Shown here in pieces: positions 2,924 through 17,286 of a stretch of DNA of 17,286 nucleotides. Position 1 is the first letter of the stretch. Each line of letters begins with the position of its first letter. The position numbers and the translations under genes are program-made. The DNA is taken from assembly GCA_054661495.1 (NCBI GenBank), contig BAAFSQ010000214.1, positions 1 through 17,286 on the forward strand, written 5' to 3'. The notes below the pieces were generated by a model, which worked only from the letters and a program-made list of their open reading frames with translations, was not told where the DNA came from and made no database searches. Source of the DNA: Zygophlyctis sp. KS116 (lineage: Eukaryota > Fungi > Chytridiomycota).

Positions 2924-5923
<3,000 letters not shown>

Positions 5924-5957
5924 TTGCGTCGTAAAACTTACCAATTTGCGCGTTTTG

Positions 5958-6153
5958 ATGCGACTCCGAAAGTCTTTTAGATCTGTAAGTCTAGTTATTA
6001 ATAATCAAGGTCAAGAATGCAATCAAAGATTTAATGCAAAACTCAAATGGAACTGCATCAGAAATATCTGTAAGAGCTGATAAAATCCAAGATGAACCCA
6101 TGGAAAAGCTTCAAAAAGATTCAATCGCTGAATTAAGAAAGAAATCTGCTTGA
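5958..6153 (+). CDS. Candidate spliced 56-aa microprotein of unknown function
   Basis: Exon 5958-5984, then a 25-nt intron 5985-6009 (GTAAGTCTAGTTATTAATAATCAAG), then exon 6010-6153. Product: MRLRKSFRSVKNAIKDLMQNSNGTASEISVRADKIQDEPMEKLQKDSIAELRKKSA*. It stops 2 bp from the stop codon of the convergent methyltransferase. Confidence 0.55.
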
Positions 6154-6155
6154 AT

Positions 6156-7187
6156 TTATGATTTCTTAAATTTGCAAATAAAAAATCCTTGATATTGTGA
6201 GTCTGGAAAAATTCTGAGAAATCTATTGTCCGCCAATGCAAAATGAGAAAATGATTGCAAGCTGCATAATTCCAAATCAGCATGTCGTTCTAGAAAAGTG
6301 TTTGCAATCCCTTCATTTTCAATAGAGTTTAATGTGCAAGTAGAATATACGAGTGACCCTCCTGTAGATAATAGAGAATAAGCAGCCTCCAAGAGTGCAG
6401 ATTGTAATCGGGCATACTTTTTGACTCCTAAAAGAGACCAATCACGATAAGATTTGGGATCCTTTAGAGATATAATTCCTTCTCCTGAACAAGGAGCATC
6501 AAGTAGAATATAATCAAAGGGTAGATCAAAAGATTTAGAGGAATTTTTATCAGTGATTTCATCCTTTTCCAATATCTGAAACTTTCTAGCATCTGCAGAT
6601 CTAATTTCTAGTCTGGATTTGAGATTTCTAGGAACCAGGGTATTCATGTTACGATAAAGTCTACTTAATCTATCTGAACTAATATCATTTGCAATTAGAG
6701 TGCTGTTTTGATTAGTGTCACCAGTATGTAGGGATTCTAATGATTCTAGTAACTGAAATGTTTTCCCTCCTGGAGCTGCACACATGTCTAGTACTCTAGA
6801 TCCTGGGGTTGGATTTAATATAATAGGAGGGATCATTGATGAAAGAGACTGAAAATGAATTTGTCCGGATGTATGACATGGTAAATGGTAAAGATCGTTG
6901 ACCTGTGCATCTGCTTCAGTAAGAATAAAAGCTCCCGAATTCCATTCTTGTTTGGAAATGTTTGATTTGAATTTTTTAAATCTTAGATATTCTTGGATAT
7001 CATTGAGGATTTTAGATTCTAGAGCTTTATCAGTTTTAGGGACCTTTAAGCGATTAAATCTAAATGATGTTTTTCTGGGTGTATTGTATGATTTAATTAA
7101 TGCATCAAGCTGACCTGGAGTATATTGATCTTTAAGGCATTCTAATAAACTGGACAGTAACTCTCTACCTTTTCTAATAGATGTCAT
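6156..7187 (-). CDS. RsmB/RsmF/NOP2-Sun family RNA (cytosine-5) methyltransferase, about 343 aa
   Basis: Motifs QSLSSMIPP, VLDMCAAPGGKT, LLDAPCSG (motif IV Cys), VYSTCT (catalytic motif VI Cys), ENE and GFFI. No intron is needed. A possible but unconfirmed upstream exon starts at ATG 7259 via an atypical 30-nt intron 7194-7223. Confidence 0.9.
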   Translation of the reverse strand: MTSIRKGRELLSSLLECLKDQYTPGQLDALIKSYNTPRKTSFRFNRLKVPKTDKALESKILNDIQEYLRFKKFKSNISKQEWNSGAFILTEADAQVNDLYHLPCHTSGQIHFQSLSSMIPPIILNPTPGSRVLDMCAAPGGKTFQLLESLESLHTGDTNQNSTLIANDISSDRLSRLYRNMNTLVPRNLKSRLEIRSADARKFQILEKDEITDKNSSKSFDLPFDYILLDAPCSGEGIISLKDPKSYRDWSLLGVKKYARLQSALLEAAYSLLSTGGSLVYSTCTLNSIENEGIANTFLERHADLELCSLQSFSHFALADNRFLRIFPDSQYQGFFICKFKKS

Positions 7188-7393
7188 CAACTGCTACAAA
7201 CTCTACGGGTCAAGCTGTAGTACAAGGCGCTGACAAATCTGCTGATTAGATCTACTCATCGTATGAATTAGATACACCGTACGCATCATTAACGAAAAAT
7301 AATACTAATGGATGCATTATGATGGTAAATAAGTTACTGAATGACATATTATTCTTTCACATGATCGACAGTGGGACGTCACAAAAAACATAA

Positions 7394-8983
7394 ATGGCAT
7401 CATGTAATACTTGTTTAGTATGGACAAAGCTTCAGTCAATGAAATGGGTAACTTTTGTTTTCTCTTGTCTGTGTATGGCTACTGCTGGAACGATCAGTAC
7501 CTTTGCAGTGTTTTCTGAAGGACTTCGGACAAAATTTAATTTTGGCACAAGTGATGTGAATCTAATCAGTTCTTTTGGAACTTCATCTCTATATGTATCA
7601 TTACTACTTATTGGTCCAATTTATGATAAATTAGGTGTTAAATTCACAATGGTAATTATCACAGTCTAAACCATAGGTAATGGGAATGGCAGCTCATTTG
7701 ACTGGATATCTTTTACTATGGGCTGCTTACGATCAAAGAATATCAATAGAACCTTCTCCAGTAATTCTTGGAGCATTTTATTTTCTGGCAGGATACGGTG
7801 CCGTTTGCTTTTACATGTCATCAGTTGGAGTTAATGTTATCAATTTCAAAGCCAAATATATCGGATTAGTGACTGCTTTTCTATTGTTATCATATGGTAT
7901 GTCTGGATCTATATATTCGCAAATATTTTCATTTTTCTATGCAGATATTGGTGATGGTAAGAGTGATATTCCAGGATATCTACTCTTTATTGCGATCAGT
8001 GGAACAGTTATCAATTTTATTTGTACAGTTTTTATGTTTTCAGTTTCTCAAACTATGGAGAATAAACTCTTGGAAGAGTCTAAAGGGACATCAAAGAAGG
8101 AACCTTTACTCCCAGCTGCAATAAAATCATCAGAGATCAAGCAGAATGATGATTTTGAAATTCCTTTAATCGATAGAAAAGCACCTCAAACGTTATATTC
8201 AAATCCTGATCCAGAGTCTGCCAATACAGCAGTAGTTCTTACAGAACAGACACAATCAGAAGAACCTCCCGATAATTCGCTTACTCCTGGTCAAATCTTA
8301 ATGACAGGAGTGTTCTGGTTATATACAATCACATATACTGTCCAGCAAGGGTTTTCATATGTGACTAATATATCGTTTATCATAAAAGCGATTGAAGGTC
8401 CGAATGCAGATCCCACTTGGATAGCTAAAACTGCAGCAGATCATATTACTCTTTTCTCTGTTGCTAATAGTGCAGCCAGATTTTTGTTTGCTATTCTTTC
8501 TGATATTATTGGAGATAAATTGGGACTCGATCGCTCCTTCTTATTGATTATTGGTGAACTTATCATGTTCATCCCTCAACTTGCATTGGCAATTGGAACA
8601 GATGCAATAGATGTTGGTAATAATGTACTCTGGATGTGCTCATTATTCGTTGGCGTTGGATGGGGAGCAGGTGGTGCCTTATTTCCTTCATTGACAAGAG
8701 ATTTTTTTGGTATGAAAATTGATGTATTAAAAATCAAGGAACAAAATATTATGGAACAGCGAGCGGTTTTATAATGACTTCAGTACCAATAGGCATCGTA
8801 TTTTCTAATCAGATATTTGGTGCATTCTATGATATGGAATCTTTAGCACAAGGCTCAAATGATGGTCAATGTTATGGAAAAACTTGTTATCAAAGCGCTT
8901 TTGTAGTGAGCTCTGTTCTTCAACTAATTGCAGTCATTCTATCAATTGTTTTATTTAGATTCAGAATGACAAGATCAAGATAA
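7394..8983 (+). CDS. MFS transporter, nodulin-like/Mch1-like, 511 aa
   Basis: Introns 7652-7676 (25 nt) and 8710-8738 (29 nt). Two hydrophobic halves separated by a hydrophilic loop. GPIYDKLG motif, LTRDFFG|TKYYGTASG, and IFGAFYD...QCYGKTCYQSAF, characteristic of nodulin-like MFS. Confidence 0.87.
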
Positions 8984-9034
8984 TAATAGAATCCCTTGTT
9001 TCGGAATTTCACGCGTACCTCTCTGCCTCATTTA

Positions 9035-9385
9035 ATGTCCTCTCGGTTATCAGCACGAGATGAGCTAGCAAAGAGCATCGGCTTCTGTCCAAAAGGTAAT
9101 GCATAATATTGATAATCATGAGATGCCATGGGATGGCTCTACGCAGCTCGTGGATACTATAAACTCAAAAAATATCATAATGTAATAGAATGCGTAGCAG
9201 CAGCACTTCGAAATGAAAGGACCAAAAGAGAAGCACAACATCTTTTAGCATTTTCACTTTTAAATACAGGACAAAATGAATCAGCAGCTGCTGCATTTTT
9301 CAAATCAATCAGTCTAGGAAATGATACTGATTGGCAACCTTTAGTGGAACTATTTTTAGACGAACCCAAACTAAAATTGACTTAA
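9035..9385 (+). CDS. Small TPR-like helical-repeat protein, 107 aa
   Basis: ATG 9035 (MSSRLSARDELAKSIGFCPK|DAMGW), with a 27-nt intron 9096-9122 that carries an in-frame stop. WLYAARGYYKLKKY and AQHLLAFSLLNTGQNESAAAAFFKSI fit the TPR consensus. Confidence 0.7.
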
Positions 9386-9969
9386 AAACAATTATTCTTT
9401 GGACATATACGTTGATGTTGCCTTACATAAGTTCTTCTAGCAAATTGTTTAGAACATTCAGGGCATCCAAACCTTTTGAGACCAATGTGCGAAGACGCAT
9501 AATGAACCTTGAGATTACTTTTTCTGGTATATAATCTTGGGCATTTTGGACAAGCAAATTTCCCATCACTATTCCTATCTACTAGATCTAGCCATTCTAA
9601 TCTATCATCGTTCCATTTCTGTCTTGCTGTGATTGTCCCAGTTATTCTCAACTGTTTAGTTGCAGATGTTGTCTTGACTAGACTTGATTCAGACTTTGCA
9701 TCATCAGACTCTGGAGGCGTAGTCATTGTAAACTGATAAATAGATGGATTTAATACACCATCGAATAAATCTTCCAAATCATTAAAACCATTAGAAATTG
9801 GAGATGGATTTTGAATTTTCTCTGGGGGATCTAGAATGGGAATTTCACTAGACATTCCTAGTAAATTAAAAAAGAATGATTTTTCATCTGAATCCAAGTC
9901 CAGGGGTTGATTTGACATTGAAACAATTATTTTAACAATAGTCCAGGGTAAGTACTCATGTTTCACCAT
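9382..9969 (-). CDS. Two-finger C2H2/C2HC zinc-finger protein, probable transcription factor
   Basis: CPKCPRLYTRKSNLKVHYASSH, linker IGLKRF, then CPECSKQFARRTYVRQHQRIC. Acidic N-terminal region. The start may instead be ATG 9918. Confidence 0.85.
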   Translation of the reverse strand: MVKHEYLPWTIVKIIVSMSNQPLDLDSDEKSFFFNLLGMSSEIPILDPPEKIQNPSPISNGFNDLEDLFDGVLNPSIYQFTMTTPPESDDAKSESSLVKTTSATKQLRITGTITARQKWNDDRLEWLDLVDRNSDGKFACPKCPRLYTRKSNLKVHYASSHIGLKRFGCPECSKQFARRTYVRQHQRICPKNNCF

Positions 9970-9973
9970 TGAA

Positions 9974-10017
9974 AAAATTTGCTAGTCACGAAAATTTGCA
10001 TCTTGAAAATTTGCATC
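9974..10017. promoter_or_regulatory. Repeated motif in the divergent promoter between the C2H2 gene and chitin synthase
   Basis: GAAAATTTGCATC occurs exactly at 9990-10002 and 10005-10017, with a partial AAAATTTGC at 9974-9982. An SCB-like CACGAAAA lies at 9987-9994. Confidence 0.5.
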
Positions 10018-10024
10018 GTATTAA

Positions 10025-12735
10025 ATGGCTGATCAAGCGACTGATAAAGAACGGCTCTTATCAGACAATGGTCAACAAAATATTAAGCATACATATTTAC
10101 CCAGGCATGCACAGATATTAACTAAATCCAATCAATCTGCATTGTCTGTTCAGATCCCAAGCGATTCAAAAAATGGAAATTCTTTTACTGCAATTCCAAT
10201 CGATTGCATTGACAATTACTCTGAGATTTCGGATGCTGAAAGTATTGCTCATTCTAATAGTATCTATAATCAACCGGTCATGGGGCGACCATTTGGTAGT
10301 AGTTTTCAGCAGTACAAACCAAATCCTCCTTATCGTCAACCAATCAGAAAACCAACGGTGCGTCATATACCTTTGACTCGTCAAGGGAACTTGGTGCTGA
10401 ATGTTCCAGTTCCTGATCGAGTTTTACAGAATCAAGACGGGAAAATTGATGAAGAATTCAAATATATGAGATATACGGCGGTGACTTGTAATCCTGATGA
10501 TTTTCTGGCTAGAGGATTTTCTCTAAGACAACAGGAATGGAATAGACACACTGAATTATTTATCGTTATAACAATGTACAATGAAGATGAAAAGCTTTTT
10601 TGTAGATCAATGACAGCTGTTATGAATAATATTATATATCTCTGTAAAAGACGAAAGGATTCAATGTGGGGGAGAACAGGTTGGCAAAAAGTTGTCGTTT
10701 GTATAGTTGCTGATGGGAGATCTAAAATTGATCGACAAGTTTTAAATGTTTTAGGAATCATGGGAGTATATCAAGATGGAGTTATGAAGGATCATGTGAA
10801 TGAAAAGGCTGTTACGGCTCATATTTTTGAATATACAACTCATATTGTTGTAACACCAGATTTTAAAGTAAGAGGAGCTGAAGAGGGAACTGTTCCAATT
10901 CAAATCTTATTTTGTTTGAAAGAGAATAATGCCAAGAAGGTATAATTTATTATCATAATATTTATAGATTAATTCTCATCGATGGTTTTTTAATGGTTTT
11001 GGGCCTCTAATTAGACCAAATGTTTGTGTATTAATTGATGTGGGTACAAAACCAAATAATACTTCAATATATCATTTATGGAGAGCTTTTGATAAATATC
11101 CTTCTGTTGGTGGTGCATGTGGTACGATTATAAAACTTTACATTCTAGGTGAAATATATGCTGATTTAGGGACATGCTGGTGGAAACTGATAAATCCCCT
11201 TGTAGCTGCTCAGAATTTTGAATACAAAATGAGTAATATACTCGATAAACCATTAGAATCAGTATTTGGATATATTAGCGTACTTCCTGGTGCGTTTTCG
11301 GCCTATAGGTATGTGGCGTTACAAGGACGACCTTTGATGCAATACTTTAAGGGTGAAGCATTGCATGGTCATAATAATATTGCCGATGCTAACATGTACT
11401 TGGTAAAGTTATAAATTTATTCAACCTCTAGGCTGAAGATCGTGTTCTATGTTTTGAGATTGTCACAAAGAGAAATCAAACTTGGTATTTAAAATACGTG
11501 AAAGCTGCAAAGGCTGAAACCGACGTTCCTGACAAGGTTGCTGAATTTATATCTCAACGTCGTCGCTGGTTAAATGGGACATTTTTTGCAGGATTTTACT
11601 CATTTAAACGTTGGTATGATATTCTTGATTCTGGCCACAATATATTCCGTATACTTGCTTTTGCAATTCAAACAATTTATAATGCTGTCATTCTTCTCTT
11701 GAATGTAAGTCATTGGGTCAATTTATAATATATAGTGGATTATGTTGTCCAGTTTTTACCTTGCGTTTCACTTTATCGGAAGTCACAAATATCTTGGTAA
11801 TTTATCGAATGATCCTTTTTATGGATATGGTGATACTATATACCCTGCATTAGAAGGGCTTTATGTCGTGTCTATTATTCTCGTTATTGTATCGTCTCTT
11901 GGAAATCGCCCTCAATCTTCAAAATGGATATTTATTCTTTGTATTTGGCTTTTTGCTATTATTATGGCATCAATGATATATGCAAGTGGTTTTAATATCT
12001 ACTTGAATATAATTCAGATAAAAGAACAATGGAAAGGAATACAAACCATTATCCAATTTTCTGCTTCTCGTGATTTGCTGATAGCTTTTGCTTCTACATT
12101 TGGTATATATTTTGTCAGCTCGTTACTCTATCTTGATCCTTGGCACATGTTTACCAGTTTTATTCAATACACTCTTTTGTATCCAAGCTATGTCAACATA
12201 TTGAATGTATATGCATGTAAGTTTTATTTTTATAATTTTTAGTCTGTAATATTCATGATGTTACTTGGGGAACAAAGGGAGACAATACAGCTGTCTCTTT
12301 AGGAGAAGCCAAAATGGTTAAAGGGAAAGATGGATTAAATATGGTATCTATGGAACTTGCAGATCGTAAAAACATTAATGCAAACTATAATCTTTTCTTA
12401 AAAGATTTAGCAGGTCCTCGTCAGAAAGTTAATGAACAAACAAATCAGAATCTTACTCAGGATGATTATTTTCGCAAGTATCGTACTGCTGTTTTGTTAA
12501 GCTGGTTCTTTACAAATGGTCTGATTATTGTTGCCTTCACCAATCGTAAACTCTCGACATTAATTTATGGTTGGTTTGGTGTATCAGAAGATGAATCTTT
12601 TCATCCATATTTAAGGGTAATATACTTTCAAAATTAATTTCAAAGCTTTTATTTTATACATTAGCCGGTATCTCAGGCATCAGGTTTTTAGGTTCTATTA
12701 CCTATATTATATTTTACATTGTGTTATGCTGCTAG
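10025..12735 (+). CDS. Chitin synthase, division 1 (class I-III type), 846 aa
   Basis: Motifs [26 protein letters not shown]|INSHRW, GGACG|[20 protein letters not shown]|AEDR, QRRRW and AF|[12 protein letters not shown]. Six introns: 10940-10967 (28), 11122-11148 (27), 11403-11431 (29), 11705-11735 (31), 12217-12242 (26) and 12617-12645 (29). Confidence 0.96.
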
Positions 12736-12780
12736 CACTTAATAAATTGATAAAGTTCAAGATCAGGTTAGGTCTTGCAA

Positions 12781-13323
12781 ATGGCAATACATCGTCTTTG
12801 CAGATTGCTATCTAGCAAACGTAGCGATATTCTATCCAAGTATGAACTCTTTCCGTCATCTACCGCTCCAAATCAGCTAATCACATCCGTTGGAAACTAT
12901 GGACTAACAATTGGAAATGTATCACTAAGAGGGCCGGTAATTATTCACTTGGGAAAGATGTTCTTATGGGATGTCCCACTGTATGGAGTTGGAGGTCGAT
13001 CATCAAAAGATCCACAAGTAAATGATCCAAATTCACCCTTTCATGAATGGAGCTGGGAGGCATTTGATATATTTGATGCAGTAGATCCATCACCTGAAAT
13101 CTTGGTAATTGGTTCAGGTGCAAAAACATATCAGTTTCCTCAGGTATTTACTCAGAAATTTCAAAAGTTGGGAATTCAATTAGAAATTAGCGATTCTAAG
13201 AATGCATGTGCTACTTATAATCTTTTATCTAAAGAAGGGAGACTAGTCTCTTGTGCAATTATTCCAGCGATACCAACTAGTGCAAAAACTGGTAAAACTC
13301 TTGTTGATCTCTTTAAATTGTGA
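12781..13323 (+). CDS. NDUFAF3: NDUFAF3/Mth938-domain protein (complex I assembly factor 3-like), 180 aa
   Basis: PEILVIGSG...LGIQLEISDSKNACATYNLLSKEGRLVSCAIIP is the Mth938/DUF498 signature. The basic N-terminus is consistent with a mitochondrial presequence. First ATG is at 12781. Confidence 0.85.
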   Translation: MAIHRLCRLLSSKRSDILSKYELFPSSTAPNQLITSVGNYGLTIGNVSLRGPVIIHLGKMFLWDVPLYGVGGRSSKDPQVNDPNSPFHEWSWEAFDIFDAVDPSPEILVIGSGAKTYQFPQVFTQKFQKLGIQLEISDSKNACATYNLLSKEGRLVSCAIIPAIPTSAKTGKTLVDLFKL

Positions 13324-14123
13324 TCAAGGTTGATATTAGAATCAAAATTGTACTGATCACTGATAAATCTTGTCTTGAAGGAATATTATAGATAAATGTT
13401 AATTGCATATTTTCTCGAACATATCCAACTAGATTATTGTCTGAAAGTACTATAATTACTAATGAAACAACTAGAGAAACATAGAAATCATACCCGGGAT
13501 GAGGAAATATTGTGACTTGAGATTTCTTGGTCCGTTTCTTAGTATTTTTGACTGTTATTATATGATTCCATGCAGCAATTATCCACAAGTATAAAATTGT
13601 AGACCCGCAAGATGATAAAATCCCTACAATTAATTGTCCCATATACGATGTCTGAGTAAGATGAGAATACGTTGCATGATCTTTAAATAAAAGTATCCCA
13701 TTGACCAGACTAAACCCCTTTGCAATGCAAAGAAACAAGTTAAAAAAAGGATCTAGTATCAGTAATAGAGGACTCCAAAGCCTGCTAAAAATAGAGATAT
13801 GGAAAACTAAATAGTGAAAAGCAATATAAATTGGTAGCAAATATCCATTAATTAACCAAGCCACCGGTGTTCCTGAAAGAATATCTACATCTATTAATTT
13901 ATCAATATTACTCGCAAAGGATGCACCTCCAAAAGCTAGAAAAAGAGTTGTGATCAAACCAAAGAAATACTACTTTTAGAGTTACAATAATTACACTATC
14001 AAATTCAGAAGTCTGCAGTTTCTTCTTAGTCCGAAGAGAAAACGCAAGTGCTCTTATCGAATGGAACAAGATCGTATTAGAATGAGCAGAGATCATAAAT
14101 GTCTTTACAGCAGCATAAAGCAT
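13313..14123 (-). CDS. TRIC/TMEM38-like multi-pass membrane protein, about 252 aa
   Basis: Intron 13970-13994 (25 nt) joins two ORF-track frames (FDS|YFFGLITT). Removing the in-frame 27-nt intron 13885-13911 gives AFGGASFANILSGTPVAWL, which with GILSSCGSTIL resembles the two glycine-rich repeats of TRIC channels. Alternative in-frame ATG at 14180. Family call is by pattern recognition only. Confidence 0.6.
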
Positions 14124-14177
14124 TTTTACTGAAAATTGATGATTAAAGATGATCGATTCGAGAAGTACGTAGTGTCG

Positions 14178-14212
14178 CATTGTCTGATGTCCGAATGACG
14201 TTTTCAATTTAT
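14178..14212 (+). repeat. 35-bp direct repeat, left copy
   Basis: CATTGTCTGATGTCCGAATGACGTTTTCAATTTAT, identical to 15161-15195. Confidence 0.95.
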
Positions 14213-14395
14213 CGACTATATCGGGGTTTCGAAATGATTGATGGGATGAATCAAAATGACCAAAATAATTCATTGATAAGTCTAAGATCAATTCAGAGAT
14301 TTTATCTTTGTCCGGAGAAAGCACCTGCGAATCCTAAACTTACCCGTTGAACGTGGGAAACTTTAGGTTGAAGAAAGCTTCTTGTGACTTTAAAA

Positions 14396-15034
14396 ATGTT
14401 TCAATCTTCTGCTTATACTCTTCCAAAACTCTTTATGGCCTCAAAAGGGGAGGCCGGGAAGGCTGCACATTCTGTTCTAAGGCATGTAACTTGTCTTGTC
14501 AAAGCAGAGAAAGCTGATGGCACCACAACTGTTGGATCTGGATTTCTTTATTCTTCAACATATACAATAATGACATGCAAGCATGTCGTTAAGGATGCTA
14601 TTAAAGTGACAGTAGATGGTTTCGAAGCCAAAGTAGCTGCTGAGAGTGATTATTTTGATTTGGCAGTTTTAACAGTTAAGGATTATGAAAATCAGACCCA
14701 TGATCTTCCTTATTTAAAGATGGCCCCATGTGTGGAAGTTGGAGATGTTGTCTTTTGCGGTGGGTTTTTCAATCAGGCATATCATTTTTCTGATGGCATT
14801 GTTTCAAGAAGTGATGATCCTCACACCATTGTGGTCACAAATCATACTGATCATGGCACCTCAGGCGGCCCTGCTGTTGGAAAAGGATTAAGGGAACTAT
14901 TTGGTGTGATCTGTGAAGATTATGGCATTTCTCATCATCGAACTTCATTGATACATCCATTGGACATTGATATCTTTTTGAAAAGTTTTCCAGAATTACC
15001 TCAAATTGAAGTGTACAAGCAATATCAGGTTTGA
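14396..15034 (+). CDS. Trypsin-like (S1/Trypsin_2-type) serine peptidase, 212 aa, intronless
   Basis: GSGF, IMTCKHVV (His), DLAVL (Asp) and GTSGGP (Ser) form a complete triad. No evident signal peptide or PDZ domain. Confidence 0.88.
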   Translation: MFQSSAYTLPKLFMASKGEAGKAAHSVLRHVTCLVKAEKADGTTTVGSGFLYSSTYTIMTCKHVVKDAIKVTVDGFEAKVAAESDYFDLAVLTVKDYENQTHDLPYLKMAPCVEVGDVVFCGGFFNQAYHFSDGIVSRSDDPHTIVVTNHTDHGTSGGPAVGKGLRELFGVICEDYGISHHRTSLIHPLDIDIFLKSFPELPQIEVYKQYQV

Positions 15035-15160
15035 TAGAGGATTGAATTTGCAGATAAAAAATATGTTTCCTTGCATTTTTAAACTAAATGTATGACGATT
15101 GCTCCATAATCATAATTTTTTTTATAAAATGTATATAGTCGAAGCTCGCAAATAGAGTAT

Positions 15161-15195
15161 CATTGTCTGATGTCCGAATGACGTTTTCAATTTAT
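15161..15195 (+). repeat. 35-bp direct repeat, right copy
   Basis: Identical to 14178-14212. Confidence 0.95.
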
Positions 15196-15276
15196 TAGAT
15201 TTTCAATGTTTTTAAATTCTTTCAAGCGTGTACTAAAAACAGGTCCGACTTTTATATTTTTTTCTACTATAATAGA

Positions 15277-16188
15277 TCAATTCCTCAAGGAATTATTTAC
15301 AGGCAATATTGGCTTATTCTTGTACACTGTATATCCAATCCCTCCTAAAAACGTGAGTGCGATTCCTATTCCATTAATAATTCCTAGAGAGCTTGAAAAT
15401 AACATAAAAGATAACAAAACAGTAGTTACTAGTTTTATATTTCCTGCTATTGACATTGTTAATGCTGATGTTTTCTTATTAGAGATAAATGAAGTAATAT
15501 TGACTATAAATGCAATTATTCCATTACATAATAATAGCATGCTTGATCTAGAGTCTAGACGGGCATACACTTTCTTGAATTCTCCAGTTGAAAGAGAGAC
15601 TGATAGAGTAATGATGAAAGCAAAAAAAGAATTATAAAATAATAAATCAAGAGTTCCAAAAGATTTTTGTAGTTTATGAGTTAGTACACCTTTCAGACAT
15701 GAGACCCATGTTGCAAAAAGACATGTCAGAGTCCCAAATAATGAGAAATAATAATCACCGGTAGTTGTAAAGATGACACCAATTACAATTGGAAGAATTC
15801 TTAGCATTAGCTCTTCAGAGACCTGCTCTTGAGAATAAAATAGATTGATAAGAATTGTAATAAACGGTCCCAAGGCTCGTATTCCCTGATGTACAGATAC
15901 TGATACCAGGCTGAGAGAATATGTCGATAGAAATATATTTGCTGTATACAATAAAGAGAAGAATAGAATTTCATGCAATGCAGTTATTTTATGTAGTTTA
16001 ATCAGTTTGAGAAAATGCCCAAGACAAAGACAAGACACAGTTACAAACATTTGTATTGCCGTTAGAAGCCAAGGAAAGGAAAATGGGTAAAATTGTGTCA
16101 TGTACTTGTTGTATAATGTGATAATAATGTTGCTTAGAAGCCATGATATTAACCAAACGGAGCGGTCAATAGTTGGTTTAAAAGTCAT
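15277..16188 (-). CDS. Triose-phosphate/nucleotide-sugar transporter family (DMT, SLC35-like), 303 aa
   Basis: NIIITLYNK, FSFPWLLTAIQM, SLSLVSVSVHQGIRALGP and NKKTSALTMSIAGNIK. Roughly 9-10 hydrophobic segments. Intronless. Confidence 0.88.
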   Translation of the reverse strand: MTFKPTIDRSVWLISWLLSNIIITLYNKYMTQFYPFSFPWLLTAIQMFVTVSCLCLGHFLKLIKLHKITALHEILFFSLLYTANIFLSTYSLSLVSVSVHQGIRALGPFITILINLFYSQEQVSEELMLRILPIVIGVIFTTTGDYYFSLFGTLTCLFATWVSCLKGVLTHKLQKSFGTLDLLFYNSFFAFIITLSVSLSTGEFKKVYARLDSRSSMLLLCNGIIAFIVNITSFISNKKTSALTMSIAGNIKLVTTVLLSFMLFSSSLGIINGIGIALTFLGGIGYTVYKNKPILPVNNSLRN

Positions 16189-16327: not shown

Positions 16328-17286
16328 TTATTCAACAAACGCTGGTATTTCAGGATCATCTGTGACAGAAAGCCACTTTTCAACCTTTGCAATGGACTCT
16401 GCACGTTCTTTATCATAATCTTCTTCCTCATAATCGTAGCCCTCGTAATAGTATTCATCATAATCATCTGCCTCATAATCGTATTCATCATAATCTTGCG
16501 CTTCCATCTCGGCCTTTAATGTTTCCCTGTTTTCGTGAAAGCATTCGTTATGAAATTTCAAAAAAACCGATCCTGGCCATTCATTCTTCTTTTCCGGATC
16601 AAAATGAATCTCCGTTCCATTGTAAGAAAATAATGAACCCTTTAATTCTTTATCTGCAACTGATTTTTCTTCTGGAAGTTCGTGCTGGTCTAATGTCTTA
16701 ATAACATAACCGTTTTCTGTTTTAAAAATAGTAAATTCAAACTTATCAAATGAAGCATGTAGAGGCCGCGACATTAGTATTCCATTTCTAACATCCATTA
16801 TACGATGTTCGGGATTATTACAGCTATAAGGAAGTGCGGCGTCGAAAACCTTCTTACCAACCAAGTCATTCTTTTGAAAGTAAGCCCATGGGACTATATG
16901 GCATGCATCACACTCATTTTCATTTATACCAGTAAGAGCACAGCCATTCCTATCTCTATTAAGAATCCGGGCTCTGAATGATGATTGATTAAGTTCCGCA
17001 CCATTGCCTGTTCGACTACCTGAGCTGGCAGTAGATCGGCGTCTTTTTAGAGGTAGCTCGATTGCTGTTTTTAGTTAAAAACAAATACCTTGAGAGTTTA
17101 CTGTTTCTTGGAGCTTCAATTGTAGACGAAGCTCTTCATTCTTTAGCAATTGCTCCTCTCTCTTTAGAACATGCTCTTCTAATTGCTCTTTTTTCTTTAG
17201 CAAATGCTTTTTTTCTTTAATCAATTGCTCTTTTTCCTTGATCAAATTCTGTAATGAAACTCCTTCCTCATTCCCATATTTTCTCT
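16328..17286 (-). CDS. Coiled-coil + HNH_2-type endonuclease (Crinkler/CR-effector-like), 5' end outside the window
   Basis: The frame extends upstream of the ORF track: FRARILNRDRNGCALTG...CDACHIVPW...DVRNGILMSRPLHASFDKFEFTI...WPGSVFLKFHNECF. A 24-nt intron 17065-17088 links to a KEKEQL heptad exon. KRRR is NLS-like, and the tail is acidic and Tyr-rich. Confidence 0.85.
16411..16500 (-). repeat. Six degenerate 15-nt tandem units encoding an acidic DYD/E tail
   Basis: Plus-strand units TATCATAATCTTCTT, CCTCATAATCGTAGC, CCTCGTAATAGTATT, CATCATAATCATCTG, CCTCATAATCGTATT and CATCATAATCTTGCG encode QDYDEYDYEADDYDEYYYEGYDYEEEDYD. Confidence 0.8.
17141..17250 (-). repeat. Degenerate 21-nt (heptad) repeats encoding a coiled coil
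   Basis: Recurrent CTTTAG..AATTGCTC units encode NLIKEKEQLIKEKKHLLKKKEQLEEHVLKREEQLLK. Confidence 0.65.

Follow-up and report, generated by a model that had tools for sequence, protein, structure and literature searches.

A 35-bp direct repeat around a single-copy protease gene of Zygophlyctis sp. KS116 as the probable edge of a local tandem duplication

In the genome of Zygophlyctis sp. KS116 a single protease gene lies between two identical copies of a 35-bp sequence, which raises the question of how this arrangement arose. The DNA analyzed here, referred to as the window, is the entire contig C214 with a length of 17,286 nucleotides. It belongs to an assembly of 12.7 Mb, which comprises 1,175 contigs and has a G+C content of about 35%. 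An earlier note on this DNA had described an exact 35-bp duplication around a lone, intronless trypsin-like peptidase and had proposed the recent insertion of a gene-carrying element. The description was confirmed by sequence comparison within the window: positions 14178-14212 and 15161-15195 are identical, and the pair encloses one gene with an intact ORF, which is present once in the genome and matches Trypsin_2. As to the origin of the repeat, the two copies probably mark where the units of a local and partial tandem duplication meet head-to-tail.

The spacing between the two 35-mers is 983 bp. The pair was found to be the sole exact direct repeat of at least 16 bp in the 17.3-kb window; the longest repeat over 100 Markov shuffles was 17 bp, compared to the 35 bp observed. 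In the 12.7-Mb genome the 35-mer was counted twice at up to 3 mismatches, both times at this locus, and it is thus not the high-copy dispersed repeat that the earlier note had named as a finding against its own proposal. The similarity of the two copies extends to the left by 8 nt with 5/8 matches (to position 15153 at the right copy), resulting in 43 nt at 93% identity. Homology beyond these 43 bp was absent, as the 100-nt flanks on either side align within the range of the shuffled sequences.

The enclosed protease gene (14396-15034, plus strand) is an uninterrupted ORF of 212 codons. Its product matches PF13365 (Trypsin_2) with 57.4 bits (gathering cut-off 27.6; E 3.6e-15) and was aligned to E. 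coli DegS over all three catalytic motifs, with the triad His63-Asp88-Ser156. The Trypsin_2 fold signature and the three motifs are shared with the HtrA/DegS proteases (MEROPS S1C). The canonical HtrA, DegP and DegS proteins carry one or more C-terminal PDZ domains, whereas no PDZ match was found in the 212-aa protein described here, in which about 55 residues lie between the catalytic serine and the C-terminal end. The clade of stand-alone proteases to which this protein belongs is little known, and no obvious signal peptide was detected in it.

The family consists of stand-alone proteins of approximately 200 to 240 aa, 27 representatives of which were found at E<1e-10 in an exhaustive profile-free search. 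Only one member is named, a hypothetical protein from the aphelid Amoeboaphelidium protococcarum; the remainder stem from metagenome contigs, and the neighbouring genes on the contigs of relatives look eukaryotic (Rbx1-type RING, Sec63, PLAT, subtilase, LRR). Relatives with 33–48% identity (L008-L012) have no gene neighbours in common with the window and are hence uninformative. The protease genes of the relatives are likewise single uninterrupted ORFs; therefore, the absence of introns appears to be a family trait and no sign of retroposition. A protein search of the whole genome identified one copy of the gene, which is intact among three close strains with dN/dS values between 0.14 and 0.30. 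The protease is best regarded as an ordinary, selectively maintained single-copy gene and not as transposon cargo.

To the left of the protease, a non-coding divergent intergenic region (14213-14395) is followed by a multi-pass membrane-protein gene on the minus strand (13313-14123). This gene consists of exon 2 (13313-13969), an intron of 25 nt (13970-13994) and exon 1 (13995-14123, beginning at a conserved ATG). The intron was read from the sequence and compared with relatives, and the two exons were searched separately, never joined. The label "TRIC-like", which had been assigned to the gene, found no support: neither exon, searched separately against Pfam, matched the TRIC profile even at E values up to 10, and Atlas gave no usable match. 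The left 35-bp copy is composed of minus-strand sequence upstream of this gene together with a lineage-specific in-frame ATG at 14178-14180.

To the right, the spacer 3′ of the protease (15035-15160) is followed by the right 35-bp copy and by the 3′ flank or UTR (15196-15276, minus strand) of a triose-phosphate/nucleotide-sugar transporter family gene (15277-16188, minus strand; Pfam TPT, E 1.8e-29), which is convergent with the protease. It had been stated that the other convergent pairs in the window are separated by −11 to +2 bp. This holds only approximately, since a second pair (3313-4092, plus strand, and 4162-4614, minus strand) lies 69 bp apart by raw ORF coordinates. The 3′ end of the transporter and its flank (15204-15488) were also found as a 95% copy at positions 1-283 of contig C176, beside an ArfGAP-type zinc-finger gene. 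For the remaining part of the transporter, no second copy was detected in the genome. The C176 copy represents either a fragment of the gene or a repeat at which the assembly broke off.

Each 35-mer contains one site of the hexamer CGGACA, which in the left copy lies at 14188-14193. The recurrence of this motif, reported earlier, was confirmed with 12 sites in the window compared to 2.2 expected; none of 200 shuffles reached 12. Sites were found for example at positions 2889, 14188, 14309, 15171 and 16194, several of them just 5′ of start codons and in gene orientation. CGGACA is probably a core-promoter or 5′-leader motif of the organism.

The case for a tandem origin comes from relatives, chiefly from one metagenome contig of 1.4 kb (L013). 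A first close relative, an ENA scaffold of 10.9 kb (L025), is collinear with window positions 3996-14999 at 97.5% identity and repeats the left junction, i.e., the membrane-protein gene, the 35-mer (3 mismatches), the intergenic region and the protease. The second, an ENA contig of 1.2 kb (L007; about 98.5% identical), contains the right junction exactly, in the order spacer (about 99% identical), 35-mer and transporter flank. At the start of L007, 85 nt of the transporter (equivalent to 15360-15444) are fused directly to protease position 14570. This 15444/14570 junction is head-to-tail as well and belongs to a different unit of 875 bp, with no shared k-mer at the join.

The third relative, L013 from a JGI metagenome, encodes a protease that is 94% identical on the amino acid level. 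It has the same spacer/35-mer junction, with 2 mismatches in the 35-mer and a spacer that is 86% identical to that of the window. Past its right 35-mer follows the equivalent of window positions 14213-14423, which covers the complete region upstream of the protease as well as its first 29 coding bases (intergenic duplicate at L013:839-1030). The right copy in L013 is about 255 bp long, collinear with the start of the unit and 97% identical to the first copy of the same contig, at a spacing of 990–992 bp. It is followed by a third partial copy (24 nt at 96%, then 35 nt at 71%), by 150 bp of unmatched sequence (L013:1117-1268, without a match in the window's genome) and by the transporter 3′ flank (L013:1269-1373, matching 15199-15295).

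Both junctions of the window were thus found again in assemblies made independently: L025 has the left junction, and L007 and L013 have the right one. The correctness of the window's assembly leans on this agreement with three independent metagenome assemblies, no single contig of which spans both 35-mers. The three close relatives carry the protease wherever their contigs reach that far, and no empty site was found among them. A metagenome scan with a degenerate 35-mer returned no match and also missed L013, which should match.

Tandem segmental duplication, partial deletion, unequal crossing-over and concerted evolution between units belong to general genome biology. The locus agrees with such a duplication in several respects. 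The end of the unit is joined directly, head-to-tail and in the same orientation, to its start; the spacing equals the unit length (983 bp in the window, 990–992 bp in L013); extent and copy number vary among the related genomes (window, L007 and L013); and the copies are identical within the window's genome. The left edge of the duplication is the same in all strains, whereas its length differs: the stub of the second unit measures 35–43 bp in the window and in L007, and about 255 bp, with a third stub behind it, in L013. The locus differs from the general case in that only 35–43 bp of the second unit are left here, which mimics a target-site duplication, and in that only a few bases separate the unit boundaries from the upstream in-frame ATG that belongs to the neighbouring gene.

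Under the tandem reading, the unit would measure about 983 bp (~14170-15152) and comprise the flank upstream of the membrane-protein gene, the divergent intergenic region, the protease and the 3′ spacer as its end. Its duplication would have arisen in an ancestor of the KS116 strain and its close relatives. The array would then have grown, shrunk and been trimmed differently from strain to strain, probably by unequal recombination or replication slippage between units. In the genome of the window, the second unit would have been trimmed to 35–43 bp and fused to the transporter 3′ flank, the right 35-bp copy being read as the stub of this unit. Between strains the 35-mer differs by 2–3 bases, yet the two copies of the window are identical. 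This suggests ongoing exchange and concerted evolution between units, as exchange would keep the copies identical within one genome.

The spacer/35-mer junction is common to strains whose spacers have diverged by 14% (window and L013) and therefore does not go back to a recent event, in conflict with the age assigned to it before. In 200 kb sampled from the same genome, tandem gene duplications were detected at two loci with units of 1.8–4.2 kb; the process is thus active in this genome. An isolated short repeat with unrelated flanks was not found in the same sample. The unit spacings at the two loci (L032, C4 20001-30000; L037, C9 20001-30000) were 4,217, 3,455 and 1,805 bp, with many collinear exact blocks. 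Read in this way, the 35-bp pair is a unit-edge feature of a known kind, a remnant of tandem duplication at an unstable locus and part of ordinary genome turnover.

In the more distant relatives L014 and L015 (79% nucleotide identity), a protease homologue lies beside a peroxidase-like gene and is broken by deletions and an in-frame TGA. The protease 3′ end and its downstream sequence are repeated 2.6 kb upstream in L014 (180 bp at 97%), which is a partial duplication of the same protease gene in another lineage. The L014 contig was the sole return of a metagenome scan with the protease protein. The peroxidase-like neighbour of the broken homologue in L014 (787-2208, minus strand, 473 aa) ends in a domain of about 90 aa, which matches approximately 60 places in the window's genome and therefore belongs to a large expanded family.

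Two outgroup lineages (L026/L027 and L028), whose membrane proteins are 61–65% identical to that of the window, carry an Aurora-like kinase gene directly upstream of the membrane-protein gene. The side with DUF498 is common to both outgroup lineages, and in L027 the chitin-synthase genes beyond it are likewise common with the window. Homology between window and outgroups stops exactly at the conserved ATG (14121-14123), and the orthologous kinase of the window's genome was found on contig C392 (83% identity, next best 47%). Judged by gene order, an evolutionary synteny breakpoint lies at the 5′ end of the membrane-protein gene, because the outgroup neighbour is a kinase, the homology ends at the ATG and the orthologous kinase lies on C392. 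In the outgroups, the kinase stop codon and the membrane-protein ATG are 2 nt apart (TAA AG ATG; L026 6380-6800, L027 1-480, L028 1050-1560), an extreme gene packing, and the last kinase intron measures 26–27 nt.

The outgroup sequences also bear on the start of the membrane-protein gene, for which further in-frame ATGs exist upstream at 14180 and 14270. The minus-strand ATG at 14180, in which the duplicated segment had been said to end, is indeed in frame; the conserved outgroup start codon aligns with 14121-14123 and not with 14180. Compared to the window, L025 and L013 have extra bases in 14213-14395 (an 11-column alignment gap; 7 bp counted by eye), and either length shifts the minus-strand frame above 14180. 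A start at 14270 was ruled out by this indel and by the outgroup start, which is equivalent to 14123.

A segment of 33 bp from the 3′ coding end of the protease (14983-15015, plus strand) recurs exactly at C392:703-735, about 80 bp past the kinase stop codon. Either the protease may once have had its place between kinase and membrane-protein gene, or short templated patches may mark the junctions of rearrangements here. The 33-bp copy begins where the ORF of a truncated paralogue ends (stop codon 702-704). A further exact patch of 20 bp (C392:613-632, identical to C569:2156-2175) lies at the deletion junction that truncates this C392 paralogue of a 340-aa gene; its match sits about 1.5 kb away in the paralogous contig C569. 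A reading of C392:641-701 as a mosaic of scrambled protease snippets was ruled out, as this region is homologous to C569:147-207. Both regions weakly resemble protease positions 14925-14952 (27–28 nt).

Exact patches of this type bear on a different origin of the 35-bp pair, in which the protease is native to its place and the right copy is templated filler. It would have been copied from about 1 kb away when a break in the spacer between protease and transporter was repaired, i.e., as an insertional duplication by template switching or polymerase-theta-type end joining and not as a duplication of a whole unit. The sharp edges of the repeat, its unrelated flanks and the patches at the C392 rearrangement junctions (33 bp of the protease 3′ end; 20 bp shared with C569:2156-2175) fit this explanation. 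Nevertheless, it is considered unlikely. The copy in L013 is, with about 255 bp, far longer than typical filler; it is collinear, has unit-length spacing and is followed by a third partial unit. L007 and L014 carry further head-to-tail junctions at the same gene, and no isolated patch of such a kind was observed in 200 kb of other sequence.

The insertion proposed earlier would have been a one-off event, in which a gene-carrying segment was placed at the locus with a 35-bp target-site duplication as a non-autonomous mobile cassette, by nuclease-primed insertion or as a retrocopy; the longer copies of the relatives would then result from later amplification between the 35-mers. In its favour, exact direct repeats enclose exactly one gene, the gene is intronless within an intron-bearing genome, and the outgroups show that the adjacency of protease and membrane-protein gene is derived. 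To this extent the earlier proposal stands: with the kinase adjoining the membrane-protein gene in two outgroup lineages, the protease side is the derived one. A mobile cassette, however, found no support, and an insertion of this kind is held to be quite improbable. Removal of the cassette had been expected to restore a compact transporter-to-membrane-protein junction. No relative has such a junction, no empty site was found, and in both outgroup lineages the neighbour is the kinase and not the transporter. The interpretation of the 35-bp copies as a target-site duplication finds no support in L013, whose right copy of about 255 bp is collinear with the unit start and has a third partial copy after it; its last partial unit continues with unit sequence behind the 35-mer and not with transporter flank. 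The age of the spacer/35-mer junction likewise argues against the insertion.

A further point cited for a mobile element was a 10-bp inverted repeat, which is present in the window with a left arm at 14212-14221 (TCGACTATAT) and a right arm at 15133-15142 (ATATAGTCGA). An equally long inverted repeat between the two 40-nt inner ends was obtained in 5 of 5,000 shuffles and is thus nominally unlikely by chance. The left arm reads TCGACTTCAT in L025 and TCGACTCAAT and TCGACTAAAT in the two copies of L013, with 2–3 of 10 positions changed in each. The right arm reads ATATAGTTCA in L013 (2 of 10 positions changed) and is not complementary to the left arms of that contig. Because the arms are not maintained between related strains, the inverted repeat is taken as a chance match.

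Gene-carrying non-autonomous DNA transposons of the Pack-MULE/MITE-like type have terminal inverted repeats (TIRs) and target-site duplications, and those of typical DDE transposons are several times shorter than 35 bp. A short one-gene segment, flanking direct repeats and a short inverted repeat near the ends are shared with these elements. The locus differs in that it has no family, no conserved TIRs and no empty site among the relatives, and in that the repeat reaches about 255 bp in one of them. Paralogs with the same ends and different flanking duplications, as predicted for an element, were not found in whole-genome DNA and protein searches. A DNA search of the whole genome with 14100-15300 returned only the locus itself, the transporter-end copy on C176 and the 33-bp fragment on C392. 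Cassette and 35-mer are thus unique to the locus, and no other locus has the ends of the cassette.

Processed retrocopies mediated by LINEs have target-site duplications of variable length, and an intronless gene between direct repeats would resemble them. In contrast, the segment extends over 183 bp of non-coding DNA upstream of the gene, it has no intron-bearing parent gene, and the whole protease family appears to be intronless. In agreement with the earlier note, no poly(A) tract was found at either end (no A-run before 15161, no T-run after 14212). Helitrons have 5′-TC and CTRR-3′ ends with a 3′ hairpin and insert between A and T without a target-site duplication. A Helitron was considered and rejected: the left end can be read as A/TC, but neither CTRR nor a convincing hairpin was found at the right end, and a flanking duplication of 35 bp is unexpected for such an element.

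Circle integration by recombination, another mechanism named earlier, is formally close to a tandem duplication and survives in this sense. A partial insertional duplication, or a single insertion whose 35-mers later served for amplification by unequal crossing-over, would be expected to leave similar structures.

A contig that under-represents the locus was also considered, with at least two full units collapsed by the short-read assembler or with different haplotypes joined. The order of flank, unit, first 43 bp of the unit and other flank corresponds to the minimal path through the assembly graph of a tandem repeat. Contigs of relatives break at the repeat edges (L013 starts inside the repeat, L025 ends inside the 33-bp patch), and C176 ends within the 95% copy of the transporter 3′ end. 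A collapse would, however, alter the copy number and not the nature of the feature, and with both junctions found again in independent metagenome assemblies it has a low probability. It is very improbable that the protease unit of about 1 kb is a recombination-driven amplicon, which excises and re-integrates, e.g., as a small circle, via about 35 bp of homology and has moved between loci leaving footprints of 33–35 bp, such as the 33-bp fragment on C392.

The locus calls for caution, as one gene between exact 35-bp direct repeats mimics a new mobile cargo cassette, whereas the environmental relatives point to a local tandem duplication whose edge has been worn down, in a part of the genome that changes quickly. 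The duplication junctions around the protease gene differ in each of four related assemblies, and the site coincides with the break in gene order relative to the outgroups. It may therefore be of modest use for studying the gain, loss and reshuffling of genes in very compact fungal genomes.

Sequence divergence is distributed unevenly around the locus. Compared to L025, the region 13500-15000, which contains the membrane-protein gene and the protease, differs by 3–7.5%, whereas the remainder of the collinear stretch differs by 0–2%. L007 is a mosaic in relation to the window, with about 6% divergence up to ~14765 and about 0.3% after it. Both patterns suggest recombination between diverged haplotypes, and the raised divergence from L025, a local hot spot, also speaks for the tandem reading. 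Beyond the transporter, a 15-bp periodic repeat was found at 16394-16509 within a minus-strand gene with an HNH_2 domain, where it encodes an acidic low-complexity stretch rich in Asp, Glu and Tyr.
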